Positions 68-33,680 of a stretch of 64,000 nt of DNA are shown one piece after another (position 1 is the first letter of the stretch; each line of letters opens with the position of its first letter). The position numbers and the translations under genes are program-made. The notes beneath the pieces were generated by a model. It was not told the origin of the DNA. It made no database searches and worked only from the letters and a program-made list of their open reading frames with translations. The stretch is taken from positions 174,476-238,475 of the IMG/VR virus record IMGVR_UViG_3300043425_001539. The stretch is one strand, 5' to 3'.

Positions 68-616
68 TTACCACAATCCATCAGAACTTTTAATATCCTT
101 GACTTTAGACAAATCCCAATCAAAATCTGAATGAACTTTAGATTTACTAAATATGCCTTTCATATATCTGACATTTCTAATATCCCAATTTCTTAGATTA
201 CCATCAAAAGGAGTATCATAAAACATAGATGCCATGTTGGTTACTTTACTAACATTCCACCCGCTAACGTCACCCTTAAAAGGTGTCCCTTCAAACATAC
301 CTTCCATGTTGGTTACATTGCTAACGTCCCATTCGCTAATGTCACCTTTAAAATCTGACCCATAAAACATGTAGGACATATTTTTTACATTACTAACATT
401 CCATTCGCTAATGTTGCCATTAAAAGGCATTTCTGCAAATAAGAATGACATGTCTTTAATTCGCGAAACATCAACATGACTTAAATCTGCATTAGGCCCA
501 AATTTAGCTATTTCATTTTCAATTATCGACTCTAAAGATTTCCGATCTATTGCATAAATAACTTTGTTTTGAGCAGCTTCGTTAAGAAACTGATCGAAAG
601 ATTTTAAATTTTTCAT
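68..616 (-). CDS. DUF285/BspA-like repeat protein with N-terminal capsid-targeting-like tag
   Basis: 22-aa repeats F(N/K)G(D/N)ISxW(D/N)VSNVxNMxxMF; N-terminus MKNLKSFDQFLNE; GPNADLSHVDVS cap. Confidence 0.85.
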   Translation of the reverse strand: MKNLKSFDQFLNEAAQNKVIYAIDRKSLESIIENEIAKFGPNADLSHVDVSRIKDMSFLFAEMPFNGNISEWNVSNVKNMSYMFYGSDFKGDISEWDVSNVTNMEGMFEGTPFKGDVSGWNVSKVTNMASMFYDTPFDGNLRNWDIRNVRYMKGIFSKSKVHSDFDWDLSKVKDIKSSDGLW

Positions 617-620
617 TTTT

Positions 621-1397
621 TTAAATTTTTATATGTTTCAGACCATACATTCTATCTACATTATCAGCCTTTGATAAATTCCATTGACTAATATCGCCTT
701 TAAACTTAGAGTCTAAGAACATTATAAATACATCTCTGACATTGCTAACGTCCCATTTGCTAATGTCGCCGTTAAATCGAGATTCTGCAAACATGTGCGT
801 CATATCTCTAACTTTGCTAACATTCCACTTGCTGATGTCACCGTTAAAAGTTGTCTTTTGAAACATGTGCGACATATCAATAACTTTGCTGACATCCCAC
901 TTGCTGATGTCGCCATTAAATTTAGACCCTTCAAACAATGATGACATCATTTCAACATTACTTACATCCCATTGACTAATGTCGCCGTTAAATTTAGAAT
1001 ATGCAAACATATCAGACATATCACGTACATTGCTTACATCCCACTTGCTAACATCGCCGTTAAACGAAGAATGACGAAACATTCCCCACACAGTGCGAGC
1101 ATTACTAACATTCCACTTGCTAACATCGCCGTTAAATTTTGAGAATGCAAATGTATCATTAAAATTAGTAACATTGCTTACATCCCACTTGCTAACGTCG
1201 CCGTTAAATTTTGTACCTGAAAAAGCGGCGCTTATATCGGTTAGACCTGAAACATCAATGTGATTTAAGTCAGCATTTGGTCCTAGCAATTGAATTTCTT
1301 TTAAAATAATTGGTTTTAATTCTTTTGCGTTCTTTGGGACAATAATTTCGCGTTCTGCTTCATTAAGAAACTGATCAAATGTTTTTAAATTTTTCAT
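621..1397 (-). CDS. DUF285/BspA-like repeat protein with N-terminal tag
   Basis: About 9 FNGDxSKWDVSNV repeats; MKNLKTFDQFLNE. Confidence 0.85.
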   Translation of the reverse strand: MKNLKTFDQFLNEAEREIIVPKNAKELKPIILKEIQLLGPNADLNHIDVSGLTDISAAFSGTKFNGDVSKWDVSNVTNFNDTFAFSKFNGDVSKWNVSNARTVWGMFRHSSFNGDVSKWDVSNVRDMSDMFAYSKFNGDISQWDVSNVEMMSSLFEGSKFNGDISKWDVSKVIDMSHMFQKTTFNGDISKWNVSKVRDMTHMFAESRFNGDISKWDVSNVRDVFIMFLDSKFKGDISQWNLSKADNVDRMYGLKHIKI

Positions 1398-1422
1398 TTA
1401 CTATGTTTTTTTTTATATATAT

Positions 1423-2262
1423 TTAGTTAAACAAATCTTCTTTAGACGTTACGTCTCGCAGATTTGTCAAATTCCACATATGAACACTTCTTTTAAATTT
1501 AGATCCTTGGAAGATACTTTCAATGTATTGCACTTGTCTTACGTCCCACTTACTAATGTCTTGATTAAATGATGAGCCATTAAACATAAAACTCATATTT
1601 TCTACATTGCTAACGTTCCATTTGCCGATGTTTTGATTAAATCGAGAGTCAGCAAACATCCATTGCATATCGGTAACATTTAATACATTCCAATTGCCGA
1701 TGTCTTGATTAAATTTCGATAACCTAAACATATATGACATATCAGTTACTCGTCTTACGTTCCACTTGCTGATGTCACCGTTAAATTGTGATTCCGTAAA
1801 CATTCCACGCATCAGCTCTACATTACTCACGTTCCAACCACTGATATCTCCTTTAAATTTGGAATCTTTGAACATATTAGACATATCAATGACATTACCA
1901 ACATCCCATTTGCTGATATCTTTATTGAACTCTGATCCTTCAAACATACCTGACATATCTTTTACTTTGCCAACATTCCACTTGCTGATGTCACTATTAA
2001 AATGAGAATACAAAAACATATTTTTCATAGAAGTAACATTGCTAACATCCCACTTGCTGATATTGCCTTTAAATTGTGACCCTTCAAACAAGGATACCAT
2101 GTTGGTAACTTGCGAAACGTCAATATGATTCAGATCTGCTTTAGGTCCAAGTCTAGCAATTTCGCTTTCTACTATATCCTTTAAAGTTTGTCGATCTTTA
2201 GCAATAATAGTTTCTTGTGTAGCTTCATTAAGAAAATGTTCAAAAGTTTTTAAATTTTTCAT
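1423..2262 (-). CDS. DUF285/BspA-like repeat protein with N-terminal tag
   Basis: About 10 repeats; MKNLKTFEHFLNE. Confidence 0.85.
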   Translation of the reverse strand: MKNLKTFEHFLNEATQETIIAKDRQTLKDIVESEIARLGPKADLNHIDVSQVTNMVSLFEGSQFKGNISKWDVSNVTSMKNMFLYSHFNSDISKWNVGKVKDMSGMFEGSEFNKDISKWDVGNVIDMSNMFKDSKFKGDISGWNVSNVELMRGMFTESQFNGDISKWNVRRVTDMSYMFRLSKFNQDIGNWNVLNVTDMQWMFADSRFNQNIGKWNVSNVENMSFMFNGSSFNQDISKWDVRQVQYIESIFQGSKFKRSVHMWNLTNLRDVTSKEDLFN

Positions 2263-2295
2263 TTACTATGTTTTTATTAATTTTAATATTGCACA

Positions 2296-2967
2296 TTATT
2301 TTTTTGCATATGAAGAGATTTTCCAATTTGAAGTATCCCCCTTGAAAGCTGAGTTATTAAACATGTCGGTCATATCCTCAACCTTACTAACATTCCACTT
2401 GCTGATATCTTGATTAAATTCTGAAGATTGAAACATTCCAGCCATATCATAAACATTACCTACATTCCATTTGCTGATGTCTTTGTTAAATCTTGAGTCT
2501 TGAAACATCCAAGACATATCAGTAACATTACTAACATTCCACTTGCTGATATCTTGATTAAATTCTGAATAAGCAAACATACCAGTCATAACTTTTACGT
2601 TGCTTACATTCCACCTGCTGATATCTTGATTAAATTCTGATGATGCAAACATATAGGCCATTAATCGAACATTCCGAACATTCCATCCTGAAATGTTACC
2701 ATTAAAGACTGACTCCTGAAACATATAGGACATGTTTTCAACTTGACTAACATCCCATTTACTTATGTTGCCGTTAAAATCTGAATTTTTAAACAACCCC
2801 GACATATCTTTAACTTTTGATACATCAATATGATTTAAATCCGCCGTAGAACCTTGTGTTTTGATTGCATCTTCAATTAGCTTTATTAAATCTGCTTTAT
2901 CTTTAGCAATAATTGTTGTGCCTGCTGCTTCATTAAGAAACTGCTCAAAGGTTTTAAAATTTTTCAT
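2296..2967 (-). CDS. DUF285/BspA-like repeat protein with N-terminal tag
   Basis: FNQDISKWNVSNV repeats; MKNFKTFEQFLNE. Confidence 0.85.
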   Translation of the reverse strand: MKNFKTFEQFLNEAAGTTIIAKDKADLIKLIEDAIKTQGSTADLNHIDVSKVKDMSGLFKNSDFNGNISKWDVSQVENMSYMFQESVFNGNISGWNVRNVRLMAYMFASSEFNQDISRWNVSNVKVMTGMFAYSEFNQDISKWNVSNVTDMSWMFQDSRFNKDISKWNVGNVYDMAGMFQSSEFNQDISKWNVSKVEDMTDMFNNSAFKGDTSNWKISSYAKK

Positions 2968-3079
2968 TTACTTTGTTTTTTTATACTTCAATTCGGGTAT
3001 TTACAAATATTATATACTACTTTTTCCAAAAGTTCTTAAAATATAAATATTATTTTTACCGATAGTTTTATTTTTTAAA

Positions 3080-3376
3080 TTAATTTGAAGATTCTTCTGT
3101 CTCTTCAACAACTTGTTTTTTTTCTTTTTGGATTTGATTCACAATGTATCCCGCAACCGCAAATTCAGCCCCTGCCCATAGCACTGCATCAGATGCTGTT
3201 AATTTTTCTACATTTTCATAAAAAAACCAAACCATTCCTGATTGGCCAATTATAAATGCAATACTTGATTCTATTCTTTTTTTGGAAAAAAAGGATTCTT
3301 TTGATGTGTATATAAATCCTATTTCTTGTATAAACCATTTGATATTAGTCCAACCAAAAAACCATTTTTTGTTCAT
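3080..3376 (-). CDS. Small membrane protein (holin-like)
   Basis: Two hydrophobic segments after SKKR, charged C-terminal tail. Confidence 0.4.
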   Translation of the reverse strand: MNKKWFFGWTNIKWFIQEIGFIYTSKESFFSKKRIESSIAFIIGQSGMVWFFYENVEKLTASDAVLWAGAEFAVAGYIVNQIQKEKKQVVEETEESSN

Positions 3377-3438
3377 TTTACATAGGCATATTTTTTAATT
3401 ACTTTATATATCCATAAATGTATAATGAACAAAGCATA

Positions 3439-3720
3439 TTATGATTGATACACTTCTTTGTAAATTTCGGCTAATTTAGTATAATCAGCAACTCCATATA
3501 TACGAGTGGCAACGTCGCCGTTTTTAATAAAAACTGTATGTGGAACGCTTTTAATGTTATATTTACGCGCCAGCTCAAAATTTGCATCTTCATCAATATC
3601 CAAATCTTGAATCTCTACAGTATTTTGGTATTCTTCAGAAAATTTTTGAAATGAAGGTGCCATTGCTTTACAAGGTCCGCACCAGCTGGCAGAAAATTTA
3701 ATAATCTTATTCATATTCAT
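3439..3720 (-). CDS. trxA: Thioredoxin
   Basis: FSASWCGPCK active site; IKSVP cis-Pro motif. Confidence 0.92.
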   Translation of the reverse strand: MNMNKIIKFSASWCGPCKAMAPSFQKFSEEYQNTVEIQDLDIDEDANFELARKYNIKSVPHTVFIKNGDVATRIYGVADYTKLAEIYKEVYQS

Positions 3721-3916
3721 TCTTTAAATTTATATAAATCTTAACTTTTTCGTTTTCTTTTGCCGTCATAAACTCGTTATAAATCATTAATGAAAACTCA
3801 TCTTTAAAAATTAATGAATCCGGGTTGACTATGTAATTTTTAAAAAAATTATACTCGCTGTTCTTTGCGCATTGAATAATTTTCTCAGTATCTAAAATTC
3901 TTTTATTAAATCCCAT
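3707..3916 (-). CDS. Hypothetical protein
   Basis: 69-aa ORF in the minus-strand gene run. Confidence 0.55.
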   Translation of the reverse strand: MGFNKRILDTEKIIQCAKNSEYNFFKNYIVNPDSLIFKDEFSLMIYNEFMTAKENEKVKIYINLKNEYE

Positions 3917-4072
3917 AATCTTGTTAGTTAAAAATCTGTTTGTGTGCTTTGTAGACGTTTATCCCAAAAAAAGTTAGCATTCTGTATTTCATAATATATA
4001 GCTTTATTTTAGGCATTAATCTCTGATATACACCAATCCTCAAACAGATTTTTAATTTGTTTATATATCATA

Positions 4073-4342
4073 CTATTCTTGATTCAATTCTTTCATTCCA
4101 CGGTGAATATCCTTGATAGTGTAAATACCTTGTGGACTATTGTCAACAGGATAGACTTTTGTTTTTGGCGGCAAAAATTTTGCGATTGGTGATTTCCAAT
4201 AAAAATTTTTATAGCCTCGGAAAGCAACCTCAACTATTTCCACATCATCATCGTCCAAAATATCTGAAATGTCCGTATCTTCATCAATTTTAATATCTAA
4301 CAATGAATTATCTTTAATAATAACTGCGAATAGTGTACTCAT
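4073..4342 (-). CDS. Hypothetical protein
   Basis: ORF with A-rich leader. Confidence 0.6.
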   Translation of the reverse strand: MSTLFAVIIKDNSLLDIKIDEDTDISDILDDDDVEIVEVAFRGYKNFYWKSPIAKFLPPKTKVYPVDNSPQGIYTIKDIHRGMKELNQE

Positions 4343-4364
4343 ATTTATGTTTTTTAAATGTTAA

Positions 4365-5036
4365 TTAATGTTTTTTAACCGCATCTTTAACTCTGTTAAT
4401 TAAGCTAGAAATTTCTTCGACATTATCCACCGACCAAGCTTCTGTTTTTAGGATAACAAAACCTCCATCAGTACGGTCAAGACCTAAGTCTGAAACAACT
4501 TCTATGGTTAAAGTTTGATCTTCTCCATTAACGCAGTCGCCTTCCTGCCAAAATTCAAATTTTGCTGACATAAGTACTGCTTCTTGTGAATCTAAATCTT
4601 TTTTATTTTCTAAAGTATTATCCATAATTTCTTCAGGTTTCTTTTTCATAATTAAACTATTCTGCCAGCTGCTTGTATCAAATCCTTCACCTAAATAAAT
4701 AAAATGCTTGTCTTTTGATGACCAGTGTCCACACTGAGACTTTGATCTTATTAAAACAGGTTCATTTGCATAAGCAAAAGCTAATCCGTTTTCATTAACC
4801 GCAACATAATTGTATTGGTCAGGTATGTCTTTTTCGGATAGCTGTTTAATCTTTCTTATGACAGAATGTTCCCAATTACTAGAGTCAAAGCCATAATCAA
4901 TAAATTCCATTCCTTCTCCATACCAAATATCTGAAAAATGTCGTGGCACATCTTTAAATCCTTTAGCAAGACCGTCAGGATCAACAGCAGCCCATTCACA
5001 ATTTTCAGGTATGTCCTGTTGTGATAATTTTTTCAT
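4365..5036 (-). CDS. Hypothetical protein with two tandem WAAVDxxG domains (paralog family)
   Basis: Internal duplication KxLSxxDIP..(W/Y)xAV(D/N)xxGLA..G(F)DxSxWxxS(V/L)I; related to ORFs at 35450, 55615 and 57300. Confidence 0.7.
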   Translation of the reverse strand: MKKLSQQDIPENCEWAAVDPDGLAKGFKDVPRHFSDIWYGEGMEFIDYGFDSSNWEHSVIRKIKQLSEKDIPDQYNYVAVNENGLAFAYANEPVLIRSKSQCGHWSSKDKHFIYLGEGFDTSSWQNSLIMKKKPEEIMDNTLENKKDLDSQEAVLMSAKFEFWQEGDCVNGEDQTLTIEVVSDLGLDRTDGGFVILKTEAWSVDNVEEISSLINRVKDAVKKH

Positions 5037-5056
5037 ATAAATAATTATTTAATTTG

Positions 5057-5350
5057 TTAAAGATCCCAACTCAAGATTAAAGTGTGTACAATTTCACCTT
5101 TATTGTTGCGCTCTTCTTTTTCATTTACCGTTATTCCATTATCTTTCAACTTTTGTATCAAAGAATTTTGAAAGCGCTTTTTGTCTGTGATCTGCAAAGA
5201 AGATGCATTCTTTTTAACAGCACTTAAACACAATTCAGCAATCTTTTCATAATTGATATTATTAAAAGATGGATTAGTGCCTTCTTCATTTTGCTTTTTA
5301 ACAAGTTCAGTGCGCGCTTCTTTTAGTTGTTCAAACAGAGTTTTTTCCAT
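5057..5350 (-). CDS. Hypothetical protein
   Basis: 97-aa ORF. Confidence 0.6.
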   Translation of the reverse strand: MEKTLFEQLKEARTELVKKQNEEGTNPSFNNINYEKIAELCLSAVKKNASSLQITDKKRFQNSLIQKLKDNGITVNEKEERNNKGEIVHTLILSWDL

Positions 5351-5353
5351 AAT

Positions 5354-5707
5354 TTATATTTTGTTATTTTTTATAAAATCTTCTAGAATTTCATTTATGC
5401 AAGTACCGCCATCATAATAAACAGCAGTATAAGAAATGCTGCCATCTGCATTGGTGTGAAATACTTGTATGTCTTCATATGCAGCTTTAGAGATTTCTTT
5501 CTCAATCATCCAAATGGTATTATCTGAAAAATTAAAAATATAGTCTTCAAAATCTTCACACTCACTTGAATAATAATCATAATAAGTCACACCAGGAGGC
5601 AACCCTTCAGTTAACGGTCCAATCTGTTCTTTGCACCATTCTTCGATTGTCTTACCTTGTAAATTAATTTGTTTTAATTTTCCAATGTCTAATCTAGTTT
5701 CACTCAT
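5354..5707 (-). CDS. Hypothetical protein
   Basis: 117-aa ORF. Confidence 0.6.
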   Translation of the reverse strand: MSETRLDIGKLKQINLQGKTIEEWCKEQIGPLTEGLPPGVTYYDYYSSECEDFEDYIFNFSDNTIWMIEKEISKAAYEDIQVFHTNADGSISYTAVYYDGGTCINEILEDFIKNNKI

Positions 5708-5765
5708 ATTATTTAAAATTATAAATTCTTCATTGTTTTGTCGATTAATTTTTTACTTATTAAAT

Positions 5766-5796
5766 AAAAAAATCTTGAATTTTACAACTCAAGATT
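5766..5796 (-). terminator. Rho-independent terminator
   Basis: Minus-strand AATCTTGA..TCAAGATT hairpin followed by a T-run, downstream of the 5847-7840 cluster. Confidence 0.55.
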
Positions 5797-5846
5797 ATTT
5801 AACTCCTTATTAAGGATATTTGGTATTTTAGGGGTAGGCGTGTTTT

Positions 5847-6218
5847 TTAGTCTTGAGTAAAATCTTCAATCTTGTCATTGAAAGAAGATTGTTGATATGA
5901 AGATAAATTCTTAATTTCATCGCGTTTTCTTGGAGTTAACTCAATTACAGTGTACCCCATTCGGTAATACTTCTTTTCTGCTGCTGTCAAATTTTTATTA
6001 CGGCGTTTTGCAACTTCTTTTAAAGCTTCTTTGTCATTACCTGTTTCCATAACATCGCCCCAAGTTCCTTTAACAAAAATTGGGTATGTTCTTTTAGTGC
6101 CAATTGAACCTCCGTAATAAACCAAAGCAAATTGGTCAGATAAATTTACTTCATTACCTTCGTTGAGAAATTCTTCCGATTCGTTGATAAAATTATCAAA
6201 GTTTTGAATATGTTTCAT
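5847..6218 (-). CDS. Putative internal head protein (tagged)
   Basis: MKHIQNFDNFINE-S followed by a second EEFLNE site. Confidence 0.65.
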   Translation of the reverse strand: MKHIQNFDNFINESEEFLNEGNEVNLSDQFALVYYGGSIGTKRTYPIFVKGTWGDVMETGNDKEALKEVAKRRNKNLTAAEKKYYRMGYTVIELTPRKRDEIKNLSSYQQSSFNDKIEDFTQD

Positions 6219-6230
6219 ATTTGTGTTTTT

Positions 6231-6845
6231 TTATCCTACAATTGAAAAACTTAATTGATTTTCAGAAACTACCAAATTATAAACTTTATTAAATAGAGTC
6301 TCAACCTCACGTTTAATATCTGATTCAAGCTGTGCCCTACTTTTTTGTGCAAAGTATTGTTTTAGAGATGCTTGTTTAAAAATATTTGCAGTACTCCGGT
6401 AATTGCGTGCGCTTCCTACAAATGAAACATTGACAGTTCTAGTTTTTGCCGAAGGTATATTACTGATTTGCATGTCTTTTCCCAACTTAGATTTCACCAA
6501 ATCATTGTTTGCATTTTGCATCACTGCATCAACAAATAGTTTCAATCCAGCTAAAAAATCGCCCATTTCGTTTGCATTAAAATACGGTCCGCTACCTTGA
6601 GAAACAATTGTGTATTTATCTCCCCAACCGCTTTCTGCTATGTCACTTGTTACTGCATCATACCTACCTGTGCTTATTTTGCTTGGAACGGCCATAACAG
6701 GTACTTTGCCTCCAGCATATTGGATGGTAGCAGAATACCTTAAATCGCCGTATTCACCTACTCTCCATTGTGGCTTTCCTCCTGTCAAAGAAGCCTCGTT
6801 AAGATTTTCATTGATAAAATTATCAAAATTTTGAATGTGTTTCAT
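6231..6845 (-). CDS. Putative internal head protein (tagged)
   Basis: First 13 aa (MKHIQNFDNFINE) identical to the neighbouring ORF; then LNE-A. Confidence 0.65.
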   Translation of the reverse strand: MKHIQNFDNFINENLNEASLTGGKPQWRVGEYGDLRYSATIQYAGGKVPVMAVPSKISTGRYDAVTSDIAESGWGDKYTIVSQGSGPYFNANEMGDFLAGLKLFVDAVMQNANNDLVKSKLGKDMQISNIPSAKTRTVNVSFVGSARNYRSTANIFKQASLKQYFAQKSRAQLESDIKREVETLFNKVYNLVVSENQLSFSIVG

Positions 6846-6859
6846 ACTTGTGTTTTTTT

Positions 6860-7474
6860 TTAATTATAAATTTTTGATTTATCAACAACTGTTGAAATTT
6901 GCCAATCCGATATATCTCCATTAAACTTTGAGTTCTTAAATATACCATTCATAGTCAAAACTCTTCCAACATCCCACTTGCTAACATCGCCATTAAACTT
7001 TGAATCCGCAAACAGCAATCTCATATCTTCAACATTTTTAGTATTCCATTTACTAACATCGCCATTAAACTCAGATCCTTCAAACATACTCTGCATATTT
7101 GCAACATTGCTTACATCCCATTTGCTAATGTCGCCATTAAACTTGGATCCTTCAAACATGCTTTTCATATTAGCAACATTGCCTACATTCCACTTGCTAA
7201 TGTCACCATTAAATTTCGAGAATGCAAACATGCCTTTCATATTGGCTACCTTTCCCACATTCCACTTGCTAATGTCACCATTAAAAGGTGAGTACATAAA
7301 CAAGTCAGACATATCAGTTATTTTGGATACATCTATGTGATTCAAATCAGCATTTGGTCCTTGCTCTGCTATTTCGGTTTTAACCAATTTTAAAAGCTCG
7401 GTTCGATTTGCAGGAACAACAGTTTCTTGTGTTGCTTCATTTATAAACTGTTCAAATGTTTTAACTGTTTTCAT
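6860..7474 (-). CDS. DUF285/BspA-like repeat protein with N-terminal tag
   Basis: FNGDISKWNVG repeats; MKTVKTFEQFINE; GPNADLNHIDVS cap. Confidence 0.85.
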   Translation of the reverse strand: MKTVKTFEQFINEATQETVVPANRTELLKLVKTEIAEQGPNADLNHIDVSKITDMSDLFMYSPFNGDISKWNVGKVANMKGMFAFSKFNGDISKWNVGNVANMKSMFEGSKFNGDISKWDVSNVANMQSMFEGSEFNGDVSKWNTKNVEDMRLLFADSKFNGDVSKWDVGRVLTMNGIFKNSKFNGDISDWQISTVVDKSKIYN

Positions 7475-7477
7475 TGG

Positions 7478-7840
7478 TTATTTATATTTTAAATTTGAAA
7501 TTTCGTCAATTAAACCTCCTAAGTTATAGTCGCTTTGTCTTGAACCGCTAAAAAAATGATCTTGAATTTTTTTATTAGTCGCGGAAGAATATATGTTTTT
7601 GTCCCAATCAATTCGGTCTATTGTCATATAATATCCCACATCTTCACCGCTGCTAAATCCTTTTGCTGTATATTTTTTATTTGAATTAGGCCTATCATCT
7701 GTGATAGCATAAGTTACTTTCAAGTCAAGATTAAGTGGAACAGAAATACCATCAATTGTGTAATTATCCAATTTAATATTTATGGTATTTAATTCTTCAC
7801 TTTCATTTAAAAAAGTTTCAAACGTTTTAATTTTTTTCAT
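7478..7840 (-). CDS. Putative internal head protein (tagged)
   Basis: MKKIKTFETFLNE-S. Confidence 0.65.
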   Translation of the reverse strand: MKKIKTFETFLNESEELNTINIKLDNYTIDGISVPLNLDLKVTYAITDDRPNSNKKYTAKGFSSGEDVGYYMTIDRIDWDKNIYSSATNKKIQDHFFSGSRQSDYNLGGLIDEISNLKYK

Positions 7841-12852: not shown

Positions 12853-14724
12853 TTAAGCAATAGTTGAAGAAGTAGATACTTGATCCCAGAAAGTACCGTT
12901 AAGATCTTTCAAGTTAATCAAGAATGTGAAGTATTGCGTTTGTGGGTGGAAACCAGCCTCAACAAGTGCATAACGAGATTTAACAGCAATTTTTGGTGCC
13001 ATTGTACCTTCTGCAATTGTTTGGATAGATTCAGCCATCAAGTATGGCATGAACTTAAGACCTGGCTCTTCATCAGCGCCTTTTCTACCAACAAGAATAC
13101 GAGTATCTTCGTACTTCATATTTGGATCAACATAAATCGTCATACCAGCGATCGTTCCCAATGGGTAAAGAGCGCCGTTATTTTGATTTACTGTGTTAGC
13201 CAATGGGTAGAAAGTAAACTGTGCAGAATCCTGAAGTGCTGTTGCAATTTGCAAGTTAGTCACTACAAAGTTACCTGGTCCACGACGGCCGCGTTGTGCA
13301 ACAACGTTTGCCGCAGCAAGAACTTTGGATTGGATTCTTCTTTGGAAAGTACCTTGGTTTTCAAAAGTAGTTGCAGAAGAAGTTCCGTATACTTGAACAT
13401 CTGGGCAAGGAATTGAAACCAATGAGTTTTCTTTACCAATGAAACGAGCATTACCAGTTGATGTTTGGTCAACAAGGGTAAGGTTAAGGTTAACACCGTC
13501 TACATTGTAGAAATCATAGTGGTTCTGCCAGCCAAGTGCAAATGCGCGAGACAAGATGTGTTTGTTGATTGACTGAGAAATCTCATTAACCAACGCATTT
13601 TCCATCATAGAAACAACATCGATACCGTACTGACGGTTAAGATCTTGAATTTGCTCAGTTGTTACAGTTGCAGCAACTTGGTAAGTTTCAGCTTCAACAA
13701 ATTTGGTGAAAGCTTGCAAGCCCATTGTTCTGTACTGAGTAGTTTCACCAACACCACGGCGCATTGGCTCGTAAGGAGTCAAACCGTTGGTTGCATCACC
13801 TGCAAAAGCATCGTTATCAAGAGGACCTGATCCAGCAAATCCTGCAATGTGATCTTCAAGAGCGCGAACCAATTCAGCAGAACCAGTGATATCTCCAGCA
13901 GCACCTACAATTGTCATTCCAGTTGTTGTGTAAGTGGAAGGATTAGTAAGAGCATTTCCAGAGTATGAAGTTGCAGAATACAATGTTGCAGCACCGTCCA
14001 ATACATCAGCAAGAGTAATACCTTGTGTATTTGCAGGAAGAGCATTGAATGTTTGAGCGCCTGTGCTTGTTACAGCAGTTGATTCGCCAAGAATACGGAA
14101 GATTTGCCCGCCGTCGATTCTTGATTTACCTACATAAGCAACAAGAAGTCCGTCGATGCCAGCACCTGCAGCAGCAGCGGTAAATACATAACCGTCACCA
14201 GCATTCGCAGTTGCAAGATCAGCAAGTGCAGTTGCGCCCAAGCCAGAACGAGAAATCTTGAATACCAAGAATTTATCAGTAAATCCTGTGTTGCCAGTCA
14301 AACCGTTTTGACCTTTGATACCAGGAGCATTTACATCACGTCCGCCAGCATATACATAATCAAGATATGTAAGAACACCCGCAGGGCCATTCATAGGAAT
14401 TACAGGAACGATATCGAAGCCAACTGTTCTAGCAGCAACCTGAATTGCCAACGGAAGTAAAGATGGGAATTTATCGCCAGATCCCAATGCATTTGCGCTG
14501 TAGAAGGCACCCGCACCGCCAGCAACTGTAGAAGCTGGAGCAACGTTACCCATACCTGGTGTATTTAAAAGTGATGCTTGTGGGTAAGCAAAACCTTCAT
14601 TGAGTGAATGGTAATGAGCATACTTACTCATCCATGTTAGTTTGTTTGATTCTTTAATACCCGTCTTTTCCTCAAGAATAGGGGCCCAAGTCTCAAACAC
14701 TTGTGATTCATTTAACAAGTTCAT
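12853..14724 (-). CDS. gp23: Major capsid protein, T4 gp23-like
   Basis: VIPMNGPAG, EISQSINKHIL, RRGPGNFVV, FMPY and PKIAVKSRYA motifs; long Ala/Gly/Thr-rich insertion. Confidence 0.9.
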   Translation of the reverse strand: MNLLNESQVFETWAPILEEKTGIKESNKLTWMSKYAHYHSLNEGFAYPQASLLNTPGMGNVAPASTVAGGAGAFYSANALGSGDKFPSLLPLAIQVAARTVGFDIVPVIPMNGPAGVLTYLDYVYAGGRDVNAPGIKGQNGLTGNTGFTDKFLVFKISRSGLGATALADLATANAGDGYVFTAAAAGAGIDGLLVAYVGKSRIDGGQIFRILGESTAVTSTGAQTFNALPANTQGITLADVLDGAATLYSATSYSGNALTNPSTYTTTGMTIVGAAGDITGSAELVRALEDHIAGFAGSGPLDNDAFAGDATNGLTPYEPMRRGVGETTQYRTMGLQAFTKFVEAETYQVAATVTTEQIQDLNRQYGIDVVSMMENALVNEISQSINKHILSRAFALGWQNHYDFYNVDGVNLNLTLVDQTSTGNARFIGKENSLVSIPCPDVQVYGTSSATTFENQGTFQRRIQSKVLAAANVVAQRGRRGPGNFVVTNLQIATALQDSAQFTFYPLANTVNQNNGALYPLGTIAGMTIYVDPNMKYEDTRILVGRKGADEEPGLKFMPYLMAESIQTIAEGTMAPKIAVKSRYALVEAGFHPQTQYFTFLINLKDLNGTFWDQVSTSSTIA

Positions 14725-14745: not shown

Positions 14746-16590
14746 TTAACGTTTTACGAATCTGTTCAATCCGTTTGCTACATTCTTAACATAATCATTT
14801 GAGTAGCCAAGAGGATTAATGTCATTCTTAGCAGTCTCAATTCTTTTTGATTCATTAAGACTTTCAACAATGGCTTGATCAGTTTTGCCAAGTCCTCTTG
14901 TCTGCCAGAAGTTATTGATTTGGTATTGAGTTTCCAATCTGTAAAGGTTGGCTTGACGTGTGATGCGGTCTTTAACTTCCGTTGATGCTGCTTCCCAAAC
15001 AGGAAGGTATTCAACAGGCATGTTAGTCAACCACTTTTCGTTAGTTTCAACATTTGCAAGTGCAGATTCCCAAACTTTAACAATTCTTTCTTCGCTGAAA
15101 GAAGGATTAGCGTTGAGAGCGTTGGTGACCCTTTGCTTTTCGGTCTCGTTCAAAGAAAAGAATTCATTTCTTTTGTTCTCTCCTAAGAATTTTACGAATG
15201 GATAACGAGCATCATTAGATTTTTCATCTACCTTTTGTTTTTTGATAGAATCCAATACTGCTTCAATTTTATTATCAAGACTAGCGTATCTGTTTACAAT
15301 ATTTTCTTTGATTGAAGAAGATACCATGTCTCTTTCTTTGTTTTCTGATACATCAAATGATTTTCCATCAGCTGAAGGCATCATATTTTCAAACATATGT
15401 TCTGCATATTCAGTAAGATTTTTAAAGTCTTGTTTGGATGCAACATTTTCAGTTATATATTCTGTGTAACGAATTGCATTATCGGTATGTTCAGCAATAT
15501 ATTCTGCATATGAAAGAGTTTGATTCATTTTCTCTGCAAGATAATTGCCATACTTGATGCTCTCTTCCAATTTTTCAGCTACATATTCATTATAGTTGAT
15601 AGAGCTATTTAATTTTTCTGCAAGATAATTGCTATATTCAAATCCTTTGTCCATTTTTTCAGCAATCATTTCTGAGTACTGAATACCACGATCAGATTTT
15701 TCTGCAACATATTCAGAATATTTAATATTTTGGTCCAGTTTTTCACCAAGATATTCTGAATAAGCTAATGCCTGATTTTGTGTTTCAGACAAATAGTTTG
15801 CGTATTTACGGAGATTATGAATTTCTTCTTGAAGCTTGTCAATTTTTTCATCTTTTTCCGTAATGGTGGAAATAGAGTTTAATCTTTCGTTAATCTTAGC
15901 AATTTCGTCTTTAATAATCAACGAATATTTGTTCATTTCCTCAATGGATACAAATTCATTTTGTGACATATTTTCTTTTATTTTTTCCTTTTGAGTATAT
16001 ATCTCATTAGAATCCATGCTTTCAAAAAAAGCTGGGAACTCATTGGTTACATCATAAATTGCAACTTGATCATTATTGTCAAAACCAAGGCTTTCATTAA
16101 TTTTACTTAAGCGTGCATTTTCAAATCCAGGATCAGCAACAAGATCATACGTAAAAATTCTTTTGATCTGAACTTTTTTGTTTTCACCAACCACACCTGC
16201 TGCTCTTGACGAAATGCTAATAGGAACACCCGTGTCAACTAAATTTTTAGCAATTTGTCCACTTGGTGTATCAAGAAGCTTAATTCTTCCTACAATTTGT
16301 CTTTTCTTTGCATCATATTTAATATCTTCAATCAAGTGACTTACTTTTGATAAAGAAATATCAAATTTATCTGGGTGATCCAATTCTCCCAAAAGACGAT
16401 TTTCAGAAATCTTCTTTTTTAAATAATCCAGGTGAGGAAGATATTCTTTTTCTTCATATATACGATTATTATTATTCTCTACTCCAAATTGTGCAAAAAC
16501 ACCTTCAAGAACATAATCGTCATTTTTTTTACTTACTGAAAGATTTTCACCAGATCTTTCAAGTATCATTAAGTATTGCTTGTTACTCAT
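14746..16590 (-). CDS. gp21: Prohead protease (T4 gp21-like) fused to a coiled-coil scaffold/core domain
   Basis: N.N.RIY, LGELDHP, ISSRAAG and TYDLVADPGF protease motifs; YxEYxAEK 14-aa repeats in the C-terminal half; immediately upstream of the MCP. Confidence 0.88.
   Translation of the reverse strand: MSNKQYLMILERSGENLSVSKKNDDYVLEGVFAQFGVENNNNRIYEEKEYLPHLDYLKKKISENRLLGELDHPDKFDISLSKVSHLIEDIKYDAKKRQIVGRIKLLDTPSGQIAKNLVDTGVPISISSRAAGVVGENKKVQIKRIFTYDLVADPGFENARLSKINESLGFDNNDQVAIYDVTNEFPAFFESMDSNEIYTQKEKIKENMSQNEFVSIEEMNKYSLIIKDEIAKINERLNSISTITEKDEKIDKLQEEIHNLRKYANYLSETQNQALAYSEYLGEKLDQNIKYSEYVAEKSDRGIQYSEMIAEKMDKGFEYSNYLAEKLNSSINYNEYVAEKLEESIKYGNYLAEKMNQTLSYAEYIAEHTDNAIRYTEYITENVASKQDFKNLTEYAEHMFENMMPSADGKSFDVSENKERDMVSSSIKENIVNRYASLDNKIEAVLDSIKKQKVDEKSNDARYPFVKFLGENKRNEFFSLNETEKQRVTNALNANPSFSEERIVKVWESALANVETNEKWLTNMPVEYLPVWEAASTEVKDRITRQANLYRLETQYQINNFWQTRGLGKTDQAIVESLNESKRIETAKNDINPLGYSNDYVKNVANGLNRFVKR
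15996..16003 (-). promoter_or_regulatory. Late-promoter motif internal to the protease gene
   Basis: GATATATA followed by an A-rich leader and an in-frame ATG at 15969. Confidence 0.5.
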
Positions 16591-16701
16591 TTCTTTTTTA
16601 TATTTTTGTCTTAACAAATGACGTAATTTTAAAAATTAAACAAATTGCTGAATGTTTAATTTATGTATATATCATACACATTTTCATAAAAAAATAATTC
16701 T

Positions 16702-18194: not shown

Positions 18195-18509
18195 TTACAA
18201 AGAAGTTGACACAACAGACTTCCTATCAGGCATTTGAAGGCTATCCTCGTTTGAATTTGAAAATGATACTTGTTTCAATCCATCCTCTGTGCTAAAATCC
18301 GCAATTTTTTTACCAGCGCTATTTTTAACAATCCCTGACATCATTTTTCCGTCAAAATAGCTAACTTCAATATTTTTCCCATTCTTAAGATAGCTTACAG
18401 TTGTTTTAAGCTTTTCCAATGCGCTTTGAATTTTTTGTACCAATACTGATTCTTGCATATTAGATTCATTTAAAAAGGATTCAAACGTTTGAATGTGCTT
18501 GTTTTTCAT
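18195..18509 (-). CDS. Putative internal head protein (tagged)
   Basis: MKNKHIQTFESFLNE-S. Confidence 0.6.
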   Translation of the reverse strand: MKNKHIQTFESFLNESNMQESVLVQKIQSALEKLKTTVSYLKNGKNIEVSYFDGKMMSGIVKNSAGKKIADFSTEDGLKQVSFSNSNEDSLQMPDRKSVVSTSL

Positions 18510-23256: not shown

Positions 23257-23727
23257 TTATATCAATTTATTATTTGTATACGAATAGTCTAAATCATCTA
23301 TCTCATCTTTTAACTTTGCTATCTGATTTACTTTACTCGTATCTCCGTTTTCTTGATATTTAATTTGCAATGCCATTAAATCATTAAAGGCATTATGTAT
23401 TTTTACTCTATCTTTTGAGTTAACCGCAGCAATTATTTTATCACCCAATTTTTTGTCTATTTCTGGATGGTCATCAAGAATTTCTTCAATTGATGCTTTT
23501 CTCTTAGAAACTTTTTTATCAATTTTTTCTTCCTCCTCTTCCTTTTTCTTTTTTATTGCCTTCTTTTCCTTTTTAAAAGGATCTTCTTCATCGGATTTTG
23601 ATTTATCCTTTTTATCTGAATCATCAGATTTATCTTTGTTATCAGATTTTTCTTTATCTTTATTTAAAAAAGCCAACGGATCTTCTTCTGTAATAAAATC
23701 TTCAAACAATTTAATGTATTGTTTCAT
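23257..23727 (-). CDS. Tagged acidic/lysine-rich putative internal head protein
   Basis: MKQYIKLFEDFITE-E; GATATATA motif 4 nt upstream. Confidence 0.6.
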   Translation of the reverse strand: MKQYIKLFEDFITEEDPLAFLNKDKEKSDNKDKSDDSDKKDKSKSDEEDPFKKEKKAIKKKKEEEEEKIDKKVSKRKASIEEILDDHPEIDKKLGDKIIAAVNSKDRVKIHNAFNDLMALQIKYQENGDTSKVNQIAKLKDEIDDLDYSYTNNKLI

Positions 23728-24360: not shown

Positions 24361-24639
24361 TTACTTAATATCAATCTTGATATTATTAAATTGAATACTC
24401 TGTAAACCTGAATATTCTTTCTTTAATTTTGTAATATTTGCCTGATCTTGCAAAAGACCAACAATTAAGGATGTATCAATACTTTTTAATGTTCCATCCG
24501 AAGAAATGGTTAAAACGCCATTTTTATATGATACATCCTTAATTATATTTGAATTTGATAATATTCCTCCAATTAATTTCTCAAACTTTTCCCCACTTTC
24601 CGATTGTGATTCATTAAGAAATTCCAAAAATGATAACAT
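24361..24639 (-). CDS. Small tagged protein
   Basis: MLSFLEFLNE-S. Confidence 0.55.
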   Translation of the reverse strand: MLSFLEFLNESQSESGEKFEKLIGGILSNSNIIKDVSYKNGVLTISSDGTLKSIDTSLIVGLLQDQANITKLKKEYSGLQSIQFNNIKIDIK

Positions 24640-28488: not shown

Positions 28489-29565
28489 TTATTTTAAGAG
28501 AGATTTGGCTAAAGCAACATACTCTTGAATGACTTTTCTCACCTTTTCAATGGTTTTAATTGCTTCGGGTGATTCAGCTTTATTAAACTTGGATGCATTA
28601 AACATCTTCATCATTTTTTCTTCGTATCTTGCAACAACTGCGCGATAAAATTCATCAGCTGATTTGTATTTAATGGTTGTTCCAAATTCGCCCAACTGTT
28701 CAAGTGTTTCACCTAAACCACGAATACCTTCACAAAGATCTTCAAACTTAGGACTGTTGGCATTCATACCTCGCCAATTTGCTAAGCGGGATGCAGGCTC
28801 ATATTTTTGTGATGTTCCTGATTGTTCCCAAAAGAATTTGCCAATATCACGGATAAAGTTTTGTGCATCCGCAGTTATAAGAATATCATCAACACCCGCT
28901 CTTTTGCTATACGGCGCCATCACTTGTCCGTTAAATTTGGCACGTACACCTCTTGCTTGAATTGAAATGTCAAGAACCTCACCTAATGATGAATAGAGAT
29001 TACCCAAGACAAATCCTTTAACATTTCGTATAGGTGTCATTCGGAAAAGTGTCCATTGAGTGTATTCTTGAGGTGTAACTACCAAATCCACTTGTACGTA
29101 TCCCACACCGCCGTTGCGCATTGCAACCTCCAATATCAATTTAAGTGACGCATCACTTGATACTGCTTGACTTTCCTCCAGGTCAACCTCTGGAATCTTA
29201 GCAGACTTCAACCAATCCATAAATTCAGAATTATACAATTTGGTAGAAGAGATTTCGTTGTTGCGTTCGTTGGCGTCCAATGCAAGAGTGGGATAACCTA
29301 CCAAATAGTCAACATCACCATATGTCTTGTCGGGTTGATTCTCTAAATCTTCGGTCCACCAAGTTCCACTTCCAATCGGGCGAACAAAATCCAGCGGCGG
29401 CAGACCAATACTGGCCAAATGCTGATTGAATCCTTTGGAGATTTTTTCCATAAGTTTAACCACTTCACCAATTACATCAGGTGTAATACTGGTGCCTTGC
29501 GTTTTGGTAGTGGCCCATCCGCCTTCAGCGATAAATTCTTCAAATAGTTTTATGTATAGTTTCAT
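28489..29565 (-). CDS. Pol-beta-fold nucleotidyltransferase (tagged)
   Basis: IGSG..YGDVD..VQVD catalytic pattern; N-terminus MKLYIKLFEEFIAE-G. Confidence 0.65.
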   Translation of the reverse strand: MKLYIKLFEEFIAEGGWATTKTQGTSITPDVIGEVVKLMEKISKGFNQHLASIGLPPLDFVRPIGSGTWWTEDLENQPDKTYGDVDYLVGYPTLALDANERNNEISSTKLYNSEFMDWLKSAKIPEVDLEESQAVSSDASLKLILEVAMRNGGVGYVQVDLVVTPQEYTQWTLFRMTPIRNVKGFVLGNLYSSLGEVLDISIQARGVRAKFNGQVMAPYSKRAGVDDILITADAQNFIRDIGKFFWEQSGTSQKYEPASRLANWRGMNANSPKFEDLCEGIRGLGETLEQLGEFGTTIKYKSADEFYRAVVARYEEKMMKMFNASKFNKAESPEAIKTIEKVRKVIQEYVALAKSLLK

Positions 29566-30515
29566 TGTATTAAATTGTTTTCAAATATAATATCCGCAAT
29601 CTTTCTTGACGCTCGTGTATCACTGGGATAATGAATTGCCGTTATCTCGCGACTGCGTGCAATCTTTTCCCCCAAGGCCTTGAGTTCATCCTGAAGCGCA
29701 GGATATTTTTGCGCATAATATCGACTCATAACCAATCCTGTAAGTGCATGTCCACTGGGATATGAAGCCGTCATTGCATCAGTTTGAATCAAGGGATAAA
29801 TAGGCATGTTATAGCATTTTGCCAATTGGTAAGGACGAGGACGATTAATCACGTCTTTCAGAAAGAACAGCAGACTATCGGTTTGACTGTCAATTCTAAA
29901 AAAGTCTCCCATACTCTCATCATACCCACCGGCTTTCAATAAGTCAATAAATGTTTGTGCCAAATTGCTTACATCATCAACGTAGCGCGCAAAAGTAATC
30001 TCATCAGCCGTCACTTCACTACAGAATTGTAACAATTCTTCCAAATCCGCGCGTGTTTCTCCGCTTGAATTGCGAGGCGCCTCGGCCCGCAACTTGTCAA
30101 CCCAACCCTGCGCAATAAACCAGTTTTTAATCCGGTCGTGGGTATGTTCTGCAATCTCTTGAAACTCTTGAGTCTGATTCCCGTAAACTACTCGATCCAC
30201 ATCCCAATTGTCAACATCAGTCAACTCCGCTTCGGCCAACAAGTCTTTCCGTCCCAATTGCCGATAAACCTCTTTCCGTGTCTTTTCCATTTTTTCTGCG
30301 TATTCCGGGTCTTCATTCCTGTTAAAAACAATTTGTTGCGTTAGACTTCCGCTGATCTTTTTGAGATCACTCTTGCGTGTTTTGATTAGCCAGGCAGCCA
30401 AATCCCGGATACTCAAATCCCGAAATCTTCCCTCTGCCTCAGGCGCATCACTGTCTCTCCATTTGGGACGTTTGGCTTCAGACAACCATTCTTGAAAACT
30501 TTTCATATCAATCAA
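29562..30515 (-). CDS. PAP2/vanadium-haloperoxidase-like phosphatase (tagged)
   Basis: K....RPRP, SYPSGH and SR....HYPSD motifs; N-terminus MKSFQEWLSE-A. Confidence 0.82.
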   Translation of the reverse strand: MIDMKSFQEWLSEAKRPKWRDSDAPEAEGRFRDLSIRDLAAWLIKTRKSDLKKISGSLTQQIVFNRNEDPEYAEKMEKTRKEVYRQLGRKDLLAEAELTDVDNWDVDRVVYGNQTQEFQEIAEHTHDRIKNWFIAQGWVDKLRAEAPRNSSGETRADLEELLQFCSEVTADEITFARYVDDVSNLAQTFIDLLKAGGYDESMGDFFRIDSQTDSLLFFLKDVINRPRPYQLAKCYNMPIYPLIQTDAMTASYPSGHALTGLVMSRYYAQKYPALQDELKALGEKIARSREITAIHYPSDTRASRKIADIIFENNLIQ

Positions 30516-31302
30516 TTTTTGTAATTGTGGTAATCACGCTGGGCACAGCTGGTCTAACCGGACCTGTCCGACTGGCAATGGCTTCCAATTTAACATTACT
30601 GGTATCAGGTGACCAAACCAAGCTAACTGTGTCCCCTGCATTAAGAGCCACTTGATAGTTAATAACAAACAAATCACGAGTGCCGTTGCCATTAAGTGAA
30701 AGATCAGTTGACGAATAAGCCACATCCAAACCATTGATTCGCAACCAAAAAGTTGCCGCCGCGCTTCCTCCCGCAGTATGAACCACCTGTATACTACTCA
30801 AAATAAGATATATGCCATCAACCCCAATCTCAATCTCTTGTCCATCCAGGCTGAGACTTACGCCAGTTGCCTGATCAACAAGATCATGACTAATCACCTG
30901 TGCCACATCTTCAACGCCCAATTGTTGAACCGTTGACAAGAAAGACCCATACGCAGCAATTCCACTACTACCACTTGAACCACTACTACCACTTGAACCA
31001 CTACTACCACTTGAGGGAAAAGTCTCAACCACTTCAGTAATTGCATGTATAGGAACAACATGAGCAGAGCCCAATACCTGAATCCAACCCTCAGAAGACC
31101 TCGTTGCCCGATTACATAAATAGGCACTAGCAGCAAAAAAACTAGTAGCGTCCGTAGAGAATTGTTGATCCTGTCCAGTTAATAATAGATCAGTACGAAA
31201 AGGAACTTGTGTTTCATCAAGAATCCAATAATACTCTTGATCCTGATAATAACCACTGGTAGGATCATATCCATAACCGCGAATGATTTTGGGTAACAAC
31301 AT
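30508..31302 (-). CDS. Virion fibre-like protein with SSG linker and C1q/BclA-like C-terminal domain
   Basis: (SSG)n linker, then YGSF..Q, G.Y.I..SIQ, WLR.NG.DV..S and LNAGD.V.L.W. Confidence 0.65.
   Translation of the reverse strand: MLLPKIIRGYGYDPTSGYYQDQEYYWILDETQVPFRTDLLLTGQDQQFSTDATSFFAASAYLCNRATRSSEGWIQVLGSAHVVPIHAITEVVETFPSSGSSGSSGSSGSSGSSGIAAYGSFLSTVQQLGVEDVAQVISHDLVDQATGVSLSLDGQEIEIGVDGIYLILSSIQVVHTAGGSAAATFWLRINGLDVAYSSTDLSLNGNGTRDLFVINYQVALNAGDTVSLVWSPDTSNVKLEAIASRTGPVRPAVPSVITTITKID
30962..31013. repeat. 18-bp-period tandem repeat encoding the (SSG)n linker
   Basis: ccactactaccacttgaa, about 3 copies. Confidence 0.85.
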
Positions 31303-31653
31303 AACAAACTATATATCAACAATGGAAACAATATAACAGTAGAACCAACACTCCCAGTGCTGGCGGAAGGCCTGATCATGGGAATTGACCAGTGGATAAA
31401 TGTACTCGTTTTAATAAGTACAAATCACTCTAAAGAGTCTTGAAGACAACCAAAAAATTAAAAATGTACTCTAAATGATTGCCATTGATTGGACTATGAA
31501 AAGCGTGTAGTGGGAAGATTTTAGACGTTAGAAGTGAAATACGGCAAGGCTCTTTGTGTGTGATTTCTTCCGTGTTGGAAAGTATATTTTTCGCAGAGAT
31601 TTCTGCCCATTCTACCCAAATTACGTCTATTGGAGATATCGGAAGTGATTTTG

Positions 31654-31725
31654 TGGTACTGACTGGAATCGAACCAGTGCTACTGGTTCTTCAGACCAGC
31701 GCTCTACCAACTGAGCTACAATACC
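31654..31725 (-). tRNA. tRNA-Phe(GAA)
   Basis: GGTATTG/CAGTACC acceptor; CTGGT-CTGAAGA-ACCAG anticodon arm; TTCGATT T-loop. Confidence 0.9.
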
Positions 31726-31734
31726 AAATAATTG

Positions 31735-31819
31735 CGGATGGGGAGAGATTCGAACTCTCGGTACCTTTCAGTACGACGGTTTTCAAGACCGCTCCATTAA
31801 ACCACTCTGGCACCCATCC
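31735..31819 (-). tRNA. tRNA-Ser(TGA)
   Basis: GGATGGG/CCCATCC acceptor; GCGGT-CTTGAAA-ACCGT; long variable arm. Confidence 0.9.
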
Positions 31820-31934
31820 GTATAGACTATATATTCCTTATTCAAGGGCAAGCATTACGGCCACTTGCCCTGATGGGTCTGGCCTAACCCAATAACTCTT
31901 CGCCACTGTATGGCGGTTTTCTTAACAACTTAAA

Positions 31935-32300: not shown

Positions 32301-32357
32301 GGTTGTTAATGTTTAAGAAGTTAAGAAGTTAAAAAAATCAAGAATAGTTATAAACTG

Positions 32358-32736: not shown

Positions 32737-32861
32737 AGAGCGCGCTGCGGAAAATTTAAACTGGCTGCTTTCTGACCGATTATTCCCTGTTTCTTTCAAC
32801 TGAATCTGCAAACCCTTCGATTGCAATAGCAAATCGTTCAGCGCCATTTCTTTCTGACCGA

Positions 32862-33665: not shown

Positions 33666-33680
33666 AAGACAGTAATAGGT

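Follow-up and report, generated by a model that had tools for sequence, protein, structure and literature searches.

In phage T4, the internal proteins (IPs) IPI, IPII and IPIII are produced with a short N-terminal propeptide of 10–19 residues, MK..(Y/F)xxF(I/L)xE↓A (the arrow marks the cleavage position, here and in all predicted sites below), which is removed by the gp21-type protease. Their genes are clustered, and the fast-changing cargos are otherwise unrelated beyond the ten-residue capsid targeting sequence (CTS) (PMC9026906; PMC3012670). Within the CTS, targeting has been described to depend on residues 4 and 7 and processing on residues 8 and 10 (PMC9026906), and IPI*, which is ejected with the DNA, blocks a host restriction enzyme (PMC3012670, PMC9026906). 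A comparable arrangement was found in the window studied here, i.e., a stretch of 64,000 nucleotides (positions 174,476 to 238,475) representing the final 64 kb of the 238,475-bp IMG/VR virus contig IMGVR_UViG_3300043425_001539. Five paralogous genes between positions 68 and 7474 of the window encode small DUF285 repeat proteins with a common N-terminal tag that corresponds to the T4 CTS at its functional residues. We estimate at roughly 60% the probability that these proteins are T4-style internal head proteins, ejected into the host and carrying a new class of cargo.

Clustered paralogous head proteins that are cut past a Glu residue by a T4-related protease are also known from the giant phages phiKZ and SPN3US, where they act in the inner body and in ejection; gp53 and gp54 of SPN3US have an identical N-terminus, followed by a diverged remainder (PMC5694885). 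However, these propeptides mostly comprise more than 100 residues, feature the motif (A/S/G)-x-E, precede proteins other than DUF285 or leucine-rich repeat (LRR) proteins and belong to another phage lineage (PMC5694885, PMC13282480). Regarding the cargo, a conserved framework with variable hydrophilic residues was already described for the PARCEL repeats by Roske et al. in 2010, and these repeats are known to spread horizontally (PMC2996958). PARCEL/DUF285 proteins, e.g., LppQ of the Mollicutes, belong to the same Pfam family and likewise show a tandem repeat of about 25 aa, antisense reading frames and multigene families (PMC2996958). They differ from the proteins of this study, which bear a putative head-targeting tag instead of a lipoprotein or membrane signal, are built from units of 24 instead of 25 aa and are encoded by DNA in which dyad symmetry was not detected (no inverted repeats of ≥12 nt in the repeat tracts with an 8-nt seed, a search cruder than the motif search of the PARCEL paper). 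Many paralogous DUF285 genes in a large virus have furthermore been reported for Kratosvirus quantuckense (AaV), which possesses 38 of them (PMC10720644). CroV, again a large virus, encodes many LRR-like repeat paralogs of the FNIP/LRR type, one of which (7zal) represents a structural match to the proteins described here. AaV and CroV differ in being eukaryotic viruses, and, to our knowledge, no shared N-terminal tag of the protease type is known from their repeat proteins.

In comparison to the three T4 IPs, the present locus differs in its cargos, five acidic to neutral LRR-like solenoid paralogs, in the number of about 20 tagged genes, and in a protease that is fused to a scaffold-like domain repeating the tag motif. 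What is new, on a theme that is otherwise that of T4, is the LRR-like DUF285 cargo class together with the unusually large tagged repertoire.

All five minus-strand open reading frames (ORFs), with products of 182–279 aa, matched the Pfam family PF03382 (DUF285) with E-values between 3.8e-49 and 4.4e-108 and scores between 166 and 356 bits, the gathering cut-off being 25 bits. The 238-kb genome contains no other DUF285 genes. Each of the five encodes, in this order, an N-terminal tag, a helix, the cap ADL(N/S)H(I/V)DVS, which is itself a degenerate repeat unit, and four to nine full tandem units. The preliminary description of this DNA had reported five tagged paralogs with a shared cap, and this could be reproduced for every ORF; its count of about 5–10 repeats is to be read as 4–9 full units plus cap, and the stated unit length of 22 aa has to be replaced by a period of exactly 24 aa or 72 nt. 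Its distinction between a constant framework and variable positions was likewise borne out by an entropy analysis of 31 units. The framework F1-N-G-D-I-S-K-W8-x-V-x-x-V13 is almost invariant, F1, W8, V13, M16, F20 and a polar ladder (N2/G3/D4/S6/S23) being almost fixed, whereas positions 14, 15, 17, 18, 21, 22 and 24 reach 2.3–3.1 bits with 8–11 residue types each. This is the pattern of a PARCEL-type tandem repeat, in which a hydrophobic framework is conserved and hydrophilic positions vary. A hydrophobic N-terminus or transmembrane-like segment was not found in any of the five ORFs (maximum KD19 < 0.5), as had been noted before, but the lack of a signal peptide is commonplace in the family, given that, among the 144 family representatives closest to the N-terminal module, 67 begin directly at the cap module. 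Antisense open frames with a repeat pattern of their own (HLLMSPLN...) were observed across the DUF285 genes at 1766–2005 (+) and 6978–7340 (+); these are probably not genes, and antisense open frames are expected of palindromic repeat-coding DNA according to the PARCEL paper (PMC2996958).

The five paralogs begin with MK(N/T)(L/F/V)K(T/S)F(E/D)(Q/H)F(L/I)NEA, representing a tag of 13 residues up to the Glu. T4 IPII and IPIII start with MKTYQEFIAE↓A, and all functional residues of the T4 sequence, i.e., aromatic, aromatic, L/I and E, are matched in the tag of the window and followed by A, S or G. The same residues are conserved between MKNLKTFEQFLNE↓A and the T4 IPIII start; in T4, cutting is blocked by an Asp at position 10. 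A crude set of 299 genes was scanned for F..[FYW][LIVM].E in the 20 N-terminal residues, which yielded 19 matches, compared to 0.75 expected from the internal frequency of the motif (25-fold N-terminal enrichment). Two further tagged genes were recognized at alternative starts, resulting in 19–21 genome-wide. Thirteen tagged genes reside in the window and eight of these in the cluster at 68–7840, five being DUF285 genes and three encoding other proteins. Since the codons of the tag differ between copies, it is the peptide that is conserved.

A second line of evidence is provided by the head genes located a few kilobases upstream of the cluster. The ORF of the prohead protease (Table 1) starts with the protease domain (PF03420, 47 bits; phrog_207, 8.7e-42) and aligns with T4 gp21 over GELNHP/GELDHP and SSRGLG/SSRAAG, which presumably contain the catalytic His and Ser. 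Past this domain, at aa 258–383, nine tandem 14-aa repeats of the form Y-x-x-(Y/M)-(L/V/I)-x-E follow, and their consensus, x-I-x-Y-S-E-Y-(L/V/I)-A-E-K-x-x-x, contains the motif of the N-terminal tag. Across the proteome, [FYW]..[FYW][LIVM].E was counted 25 times at internal positions, and nine of these matches fall into the repeats. The protease–repeat fusion is kept in six relatives (L006, L007, L010, L011, L013 and L014), one of them a 429-kb contig, and in Lak-A2 an acidic linker takes the place of the Y..Y(L/I).E repeats. A C-terminal domain follows, the last residues of which read IVES-LNES. Candidate cleavage sites were also found in the first 44 residues of the major capsid protein (MCP), namely LNE↓S (4–7), IKE↓S (23–26) and SLNE↓G (40–44). 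In T4, gp22 begins with MLKEQLIAE↓A, and the sole motif match in gp23 is FGSFLTE↓A; the latter is presumably the gp23 maturation site. From the shared motif, we infer that the tag may serve both as substrate and as docking motif of the prohead core, mimicking the scaffold's own repeat. When the scaffold-repeat domain (aa 245–480 of the protease ORF) was co-folded with paralog E, the score was 0.00, which speaks neither for nor against such docking. A further ORF at 10,838–12,670 (−), directly downstream of the capsid gene, encodes a very K/E-rich protein of 610 aa starting with MKFKDYLE↓R; a family match was not obtained for its product, which is probably a coiled-coil protein and may represent a core or scaffold component.

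The following course of events is conceivable on this basis. Small LRR-like DUF285/PARCEL solenoids would be made in the cytoplasm, their first 13 residues acting as a T4-type CTS and propeptide. In the late phase of infection, each protein would enter the prohead core by virtue of its tag (aromatic-x-x-aromatic-(L/I)-x-E) and associate there with the scaffold domain, in which this motif is present nine times. The prohead protease of the S77 type would then cut past the Glu (FLNE↓A) and leave the mature solenoid free inside the head, and in the next infection the solenoids, as part of about 20 variously tagged cargos of this phage, would be ejected with the DNA and bind host targets, plausibly defence proteins as known for T4 IPI*. 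Targeting, cleavage and ejection are what we infer from the comparison with T4. Packaging and processing of the tagged DUF285 proteins are considered probable, whereas an anti-defence role of the solenoids is a tentative proposal, to which we attach distinctly lower odds and for which the argument is the analogy with IPI*. The delivery by virions put forward in the preliminary description thus gains indirect support from the modular tag, its 25-fold enrichment, the T4-type protease and capsid protein and the scaffold motif.

Proteins packaged by means of the tag could, as an alternative, serve a structural or physical purpose in the head, i.e., as components of an inner body or core, in the organization of the DNA or as an aid to ejection. 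This would resemble phiKZ, which packages clustered paralogous inner-body proteins in 100–200 copies each after processing by the head protease (PMC13282480); the similarity of the tag to the scaffold repeat fits such a role, and the roughly 20 tagged proteins would be enough to fill a large head. Nevertheless, we regard it as unlikely, because the mature DUF285 proteins are near-neutral to acidic and lack DNA-binding features, the predicted LRR-like fold with hypervariable exposed positions is typical of binders, and the set of cargos differs between close relatives, unlike that expected for an essential structural part.

Internal proteins with exchangeable cargos are also suggested by the tagged genes as a whole (Table 1), whose cargos are unrelated, DUF285 repeats occurring beside orphans and proteins of the cytidylyltransferase-like and (soluble) PAP2-like types. 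The cytidylyltransferase-like and PAP2-like proteins are possibly enzymes delivered with the DNA. Two unrelated cargos of the cluster (5847–6218 and 6231–6845) feature a near-identical 53-nt 5' segment (6180–6232 and 6807–6859) that spans about 14 nt upstream of the ATG plus the tag, with 92% identity overall and about 94% over the core. The homology stops exactly at the Glu codon, so that the cassette has a sharp border where cleavage is predicted, and looks like the trace of a recent exchange of the tag cassette. This conservation as DNA among neighbours, including the nucleotides before the ATG (the 53-nt D4 family), may also be read as a leftover of paralogy or cassette recombination, or as a favoured translation-initiation region, with the proteins staying unpackaged in the cytoplasm; many DUF285 proteins elsewhere indeed carry neither tag nor signal peptide. 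Such a common N-terminus without targeting function is, however, quite unlikely in our view. Genes far apart in the genome, as well as those of relatives, retain the motif although their codons for it differ, the homology of the unrelated cargos ends precisely at the Glu codon, the motif equals both the mapped CTS residues of T4 and the scaffold repeat, and neither chance nor paralogy accounts for 19 matches against 0.75 expected.

Table 1. Positions of the DUF285 paralogs, other tagged ORFs and head genes (window positions, unless given for the genome).
Feature	Position	Strand	Description
DUF285 paralog A	68..616	-	182 aa; PF03382 E 3.8e-49
Paralog A, parts	tag codons 578-616		helix and cap, 4 full 24-aa repeats and a degenerate one
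DUF285 paralog B	621..1397	-	258 aa; tag 1359-1397, cap, 8 repeats; E 4.7e-71
DUF285 paralog C	1423..2262	-	279 aa; tag 2224-2262, cap, 9 repeats; E 4.4e-108
DUF285 paralog D	2296..2967	-	223 aa; tag 2929-2967, cap, 6 repeats and a partial one; E 1.2e-67
DUF285 paralog E	6860..7474	-	204 aa; tag 7436-7474, cap, 5 repeats and a partial one; E 4.6e-54
Tagged non-DUF285 cargo	5847..6218	-	123 aa; tandem motifs FINE↓S, FLNE↓G; no family match
Tagged non-DUF285 cargo	6231..6845	-	204 aa, basic, pI 9.3
Tagged non-DUF285 cargo	7478..7840	-	120 aa, MKKIKTFETFLNE↓S
Major capsid protein, Gp23 family	12853..14724	-	PF07068 E 9.5e-35
Prohead protease (T4 gp21/S77 type) with repeats and C-terminal domain	14746..16617	-	623 aa
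Tagged ORF	18195..18509	-	104 aa, MKNKHIQTFESFLNE↓S
Tagged ORF	23257..23727	-	156 aa, MKQYIKLFEDFITE↓E
Tagged ORF	24361..24639	-	92 aa, MLSFLEFLNE↓S
Tagged ORF	28489..29565	-	358 aa, MKLYIKLFEEFIAE↓G; tag nearest to that of T4
Tagged ORF, soluble PAP2-like	29562..30506	-	314 aa, MKSFQEWLSE↓A; PF01569 E 1.5e-7
Tagged cytidylyltransferase-like ORF	genome 70495-71076 (L022:5995-6576)	-	PF01467 E 1.9e-7

Tagged ORFs were also detected in related phages. Contigs encoding an MCP with 71–83% identity carry them downstream of the MCP gene, with other cargos (e.g., MKHIPTFQEFINE↓S and MNNLKSYTEFLLE↓S), indicating that the set of tagged cargos varies even among close relatives, as at the IP loci of T4; DUF285 was not found within the available stretch of these relatives. 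Comparable leaders precede DUF285 genes and their neighbours in other metagenomic phage contigs, namely in L017 (MKNLFEYINE↓S, MKSLRTYIIE↓A and MKNIVEYINE↓G), and in L019, where topoisomerase genes adjoin (MKNINNFINE↓K). Two Lak-like contigs in which TAG is read as Gln (L028, an ENA contig of 273 kb, and L029, 71 kb) contain arrays of three to five DUF285 paralogs adjoining gp32 and PhoH genes, with long shared leaders (MKNLSKKILEAINTGVRMGLSLDDFDN...) such as MKNLSKKILE↓A or MNSYIKHIIE↓AFDF that end in (I/L)xE↓A. In Lak-A2, a DUF285 gene (MIKEIKKLLE↓S) is located about 3 kb from the protease gene, and the protease itself begins with ...TLNE↓AFD. The combination of tag and DUF285 is uncommon in the family, the strict tag being present in only 1 of the 144 representatives closest to the N-terminal module. 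A literature search retrieved no report of tagged DUF285 phage proteins or of CTS-like tags in Lak-type phages.

Several observations weigh against internal, ejected head proteins. In cultured phages, DUF285 was found within large proteins of 350–2700 aa adjoining tail or baseplate genes (Citrobacter phage Tr1, Synechococcus phage ACG-2014f, Kosakonia phage Kc263 and Aeromonas phage D3), which suggests an external, adhesin-like role in those phages. The tag occurs on about 7% of all genes, apparent enzymes included, far above the number in T4, though this objection is tempered by the dozens of packaged proteins known from phiKZ-like phages. With a pI of 5.0–6.4, the mature solenoids are soluble but mildly acidic, unlike the basic IPII and IPIII of T4. 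Moreover, the best candidate site of the MCP, SLNE↓G, lacks the two aromatic residues, a late-promoter motif common to the tagged genes was not found, a promoter-like element of the window (see below) serving other small genes, and the phage is an uncultured, metagenomic one. The first of these observations, together with the annotation of bacterial DUF285 proteins as surface proteins, would be in line with external parts of the virion, such as a capsid decoration or tail-fibre and receptor-binding modules directed at the host surface. We consider this highly improbable for the five paralogs, which are small, possess a propeptide resembling the T4 CTS, lack anchoring or fibre domains as well as features of tail assembly and are encoded among other tagged orphans, a few kilobases downstream of the protease and MCP genes.

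The fold predicted for the DUF285 proteins supports the reading as internal cargos that act as binders. An AlphaFold2 model of paralog C, calculated from an alignment of 40 sequences, reached a pLDDT of 95.3 and a pTM of 0.90 and displayed an LRR-like solenoid, in which the tag forms a short helix (7–14), followed by a second helix (24–38) and a regular solenoid for the rest of the protein. VIA-align matched LRR proteins of all kinds (Z 13–16). The CroV FNIP repeat structure 7zal was among the top matches (Z 15.4, 19% identity), and LRR domains of injected bacterial effectors (YopM, SlrP, SspH1 and IpaH) reached Z 12.6–13.8. Foldseek alone gave weak matches (E ~0.01), and a solved structure matching by sequence was not found. 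Both the model and the VIA matches agree with a right-handed solenoid with one turn per repeat, as is characteristic of LRRs, and I5-x-x-W8-x-V10-x-x-V13 fits the LRR core motif (LxxLxLxx(N/V)-like). The remaining half of each turn (14–24) holds the hypervariable positions, interleaved with the buried residues M16, M19 and F20. Since there is one turn per repeat, the variable residues would form a contiguous arc along the molecule. The model is therefore compatible with the solenoid binder of the preliminary description, and binding of host proteins is plausible. Type III effectors such as YopM, SlrP, SspH1 and IpaH likewise deliver an LRR solenoid into the target cell, where it binds host proteins; they differ in the delivery machine, have no sequence relation and match no better than other LRR proteins, so that the analogy is one of logic only.

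A further-reaching proposal would be that huge phages related to Lak employ a T4-like N-terminal tag, mimicking their own scaffold repeat, to load the head with a large, rapidly exchangeable arsenal of about 20 proteins, in which the DUF285 solenoids represent injected, 'antibody-like' binders that neutralize defence proteins as soon as they enter the host. We put it forward as rather doubtful, somewhat more so than the anti-defence role as such. If it were true, DUF285/PARCEL proteins would constitute a widespread class of phage-delivered anti-defence binders; the family is very large, as one search scored 8,000 candidates, nearly all of which were relatives.

Detailed analysis of the repeat DNA addressed another claim of the preliminary description, namely that near-identical DNA repeats favour gain, loss and shuffling of units, so that the array would be an actively recombining library of variable binders. 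In its favour, conserved short words of 16–42 nt return every 72 nt; the 16-mer cited there occurs in 24 copies in the region (≤3 mismatches), spaced by multiples of 72 nt, compared to 0.64 expected. Across whole units, by contrast, the DNA identity averages 64% and reaches at most 86%, the longest exact common word comprises 42 nt, and only 16–26 nt coding for the framework are well conserved. Units of the same gene are not closer to each other than units of different genes (0.65 vs. 0.63), and synonymous sites are saturated (pS 0.55–0.73). Neither the unit identities nor the synonymous saturation gave any sign of recent homogenization or turnover. The ratio of non-synonymous to synonymous changes (dN/dS) amounts to about 0.5 for variable positions, compared to about 0.08 for framework positions; with saturated synonymous sites, it is uninformative on positive selection among the units. 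The pattern is that of old repeats with relaxed constraint at the variable sites.

Comparison of assemblies pointed in the same direction. A second, independent assembly of the same phage, found in the related-locus search with tag-peptide patterns, was 100% identical over the locus. In run X3, from another freshwater sample with a second strain, divergence amounts to 0–1.3% in the flanking genes and to 13%, together with a 3-nt indel, in the 5' part of gene A, and no contig could be placed on genes B and C; contigs drop repeats, hence this comparison is weak evidence. The X3 data, which would suit a recombining library, hint weakly at a locus that diverges faster than its surroundings. Contig 'joints' at the locus, considered as recombinants, turned out to be due to cross-mapping of paralogous repeats. 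A diversity-generating retroelement was ruled out, since no reverse transcriptase (RVT_1 match) was found in the genome and no near-identical pair of template and variable repeat among the units. An actively recombining library is thus very unlikely, and the near-identity of the DNA repeats and the diversification by recombination could not be upheld. The evidence favours slow divergence combined with an exchange of tag–cargo cassettes over repeat shuffling. At window positions 3601–4000 and 5801–6000, a subsurface metagenome (run X5) showed a contig depth of 60–150x, compared to 2–5x elsewhere; these spikes are probably caused by short conserved pieces of the region in other, more abundant organisms or phages of that sample.

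If the tag works like that of T4, the motif aromatic-x-x-aromatic-(L/I)-x-E in the first 20 residues would allow the proteins injected by huge phages of an uncultured lineage to be listed, i.e., those likeliest to meet host defences first. Small DUF285/PARCEL proteins that lack a signal would thereby be placed in a functional context for the first time. A tag copying a scaffold repeat that is fused to the protease would furthermore suggest a mechanism for capsid targeting sequences. Tags of the CTS type are used for loading foreign proteins into T4 heads, and a second, divergent pair of tag and scaffold could be useful for this purpose.

The 238,475-bp contig has a G+C content of 32% and an estimated completeness of 84% (CheckV), and 283 of its approximately 299 genes are encoded on the minus strand. 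Matching Logan contigs originate from freshwater metagenomes. The closest named relatives of the capsid protein were those of the Prevotella Lak megaphages (39–45% identity), the identity to T4 gp23 being 24%, which places the phage in a distant, Lak-related lineage of huge phages. A promoter-like element, TTGTATATTTGTATATAA(T/A)TAAAAACAAC, was observed upstream of many small minus-strand genes between window positions 19,115 and 54,964, with 14 copies at 0–1 mismatch compared to 0.2 expected (e.g., at 32,662, 34,443, 37,857, 41,881 and 54,477). It includes TAnnTTTG, known as the −7 promoter box of Bacteroidota, and the genes of the phage are devoid of Shine–Dalgarno sequences; together, these features suggest a Bacteroidota host and a class of early genes. 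The stretch at 30,001–38,000 deviates in its G+C content (0.40–0.44, compared to about 0.30–0.33 across most of the window) and harbours tRNA-Phe and tRNA-Ser genes (31.7 kb) along with many short genes, a tRNA-Lys gene being located just past it at 38.4 kb.

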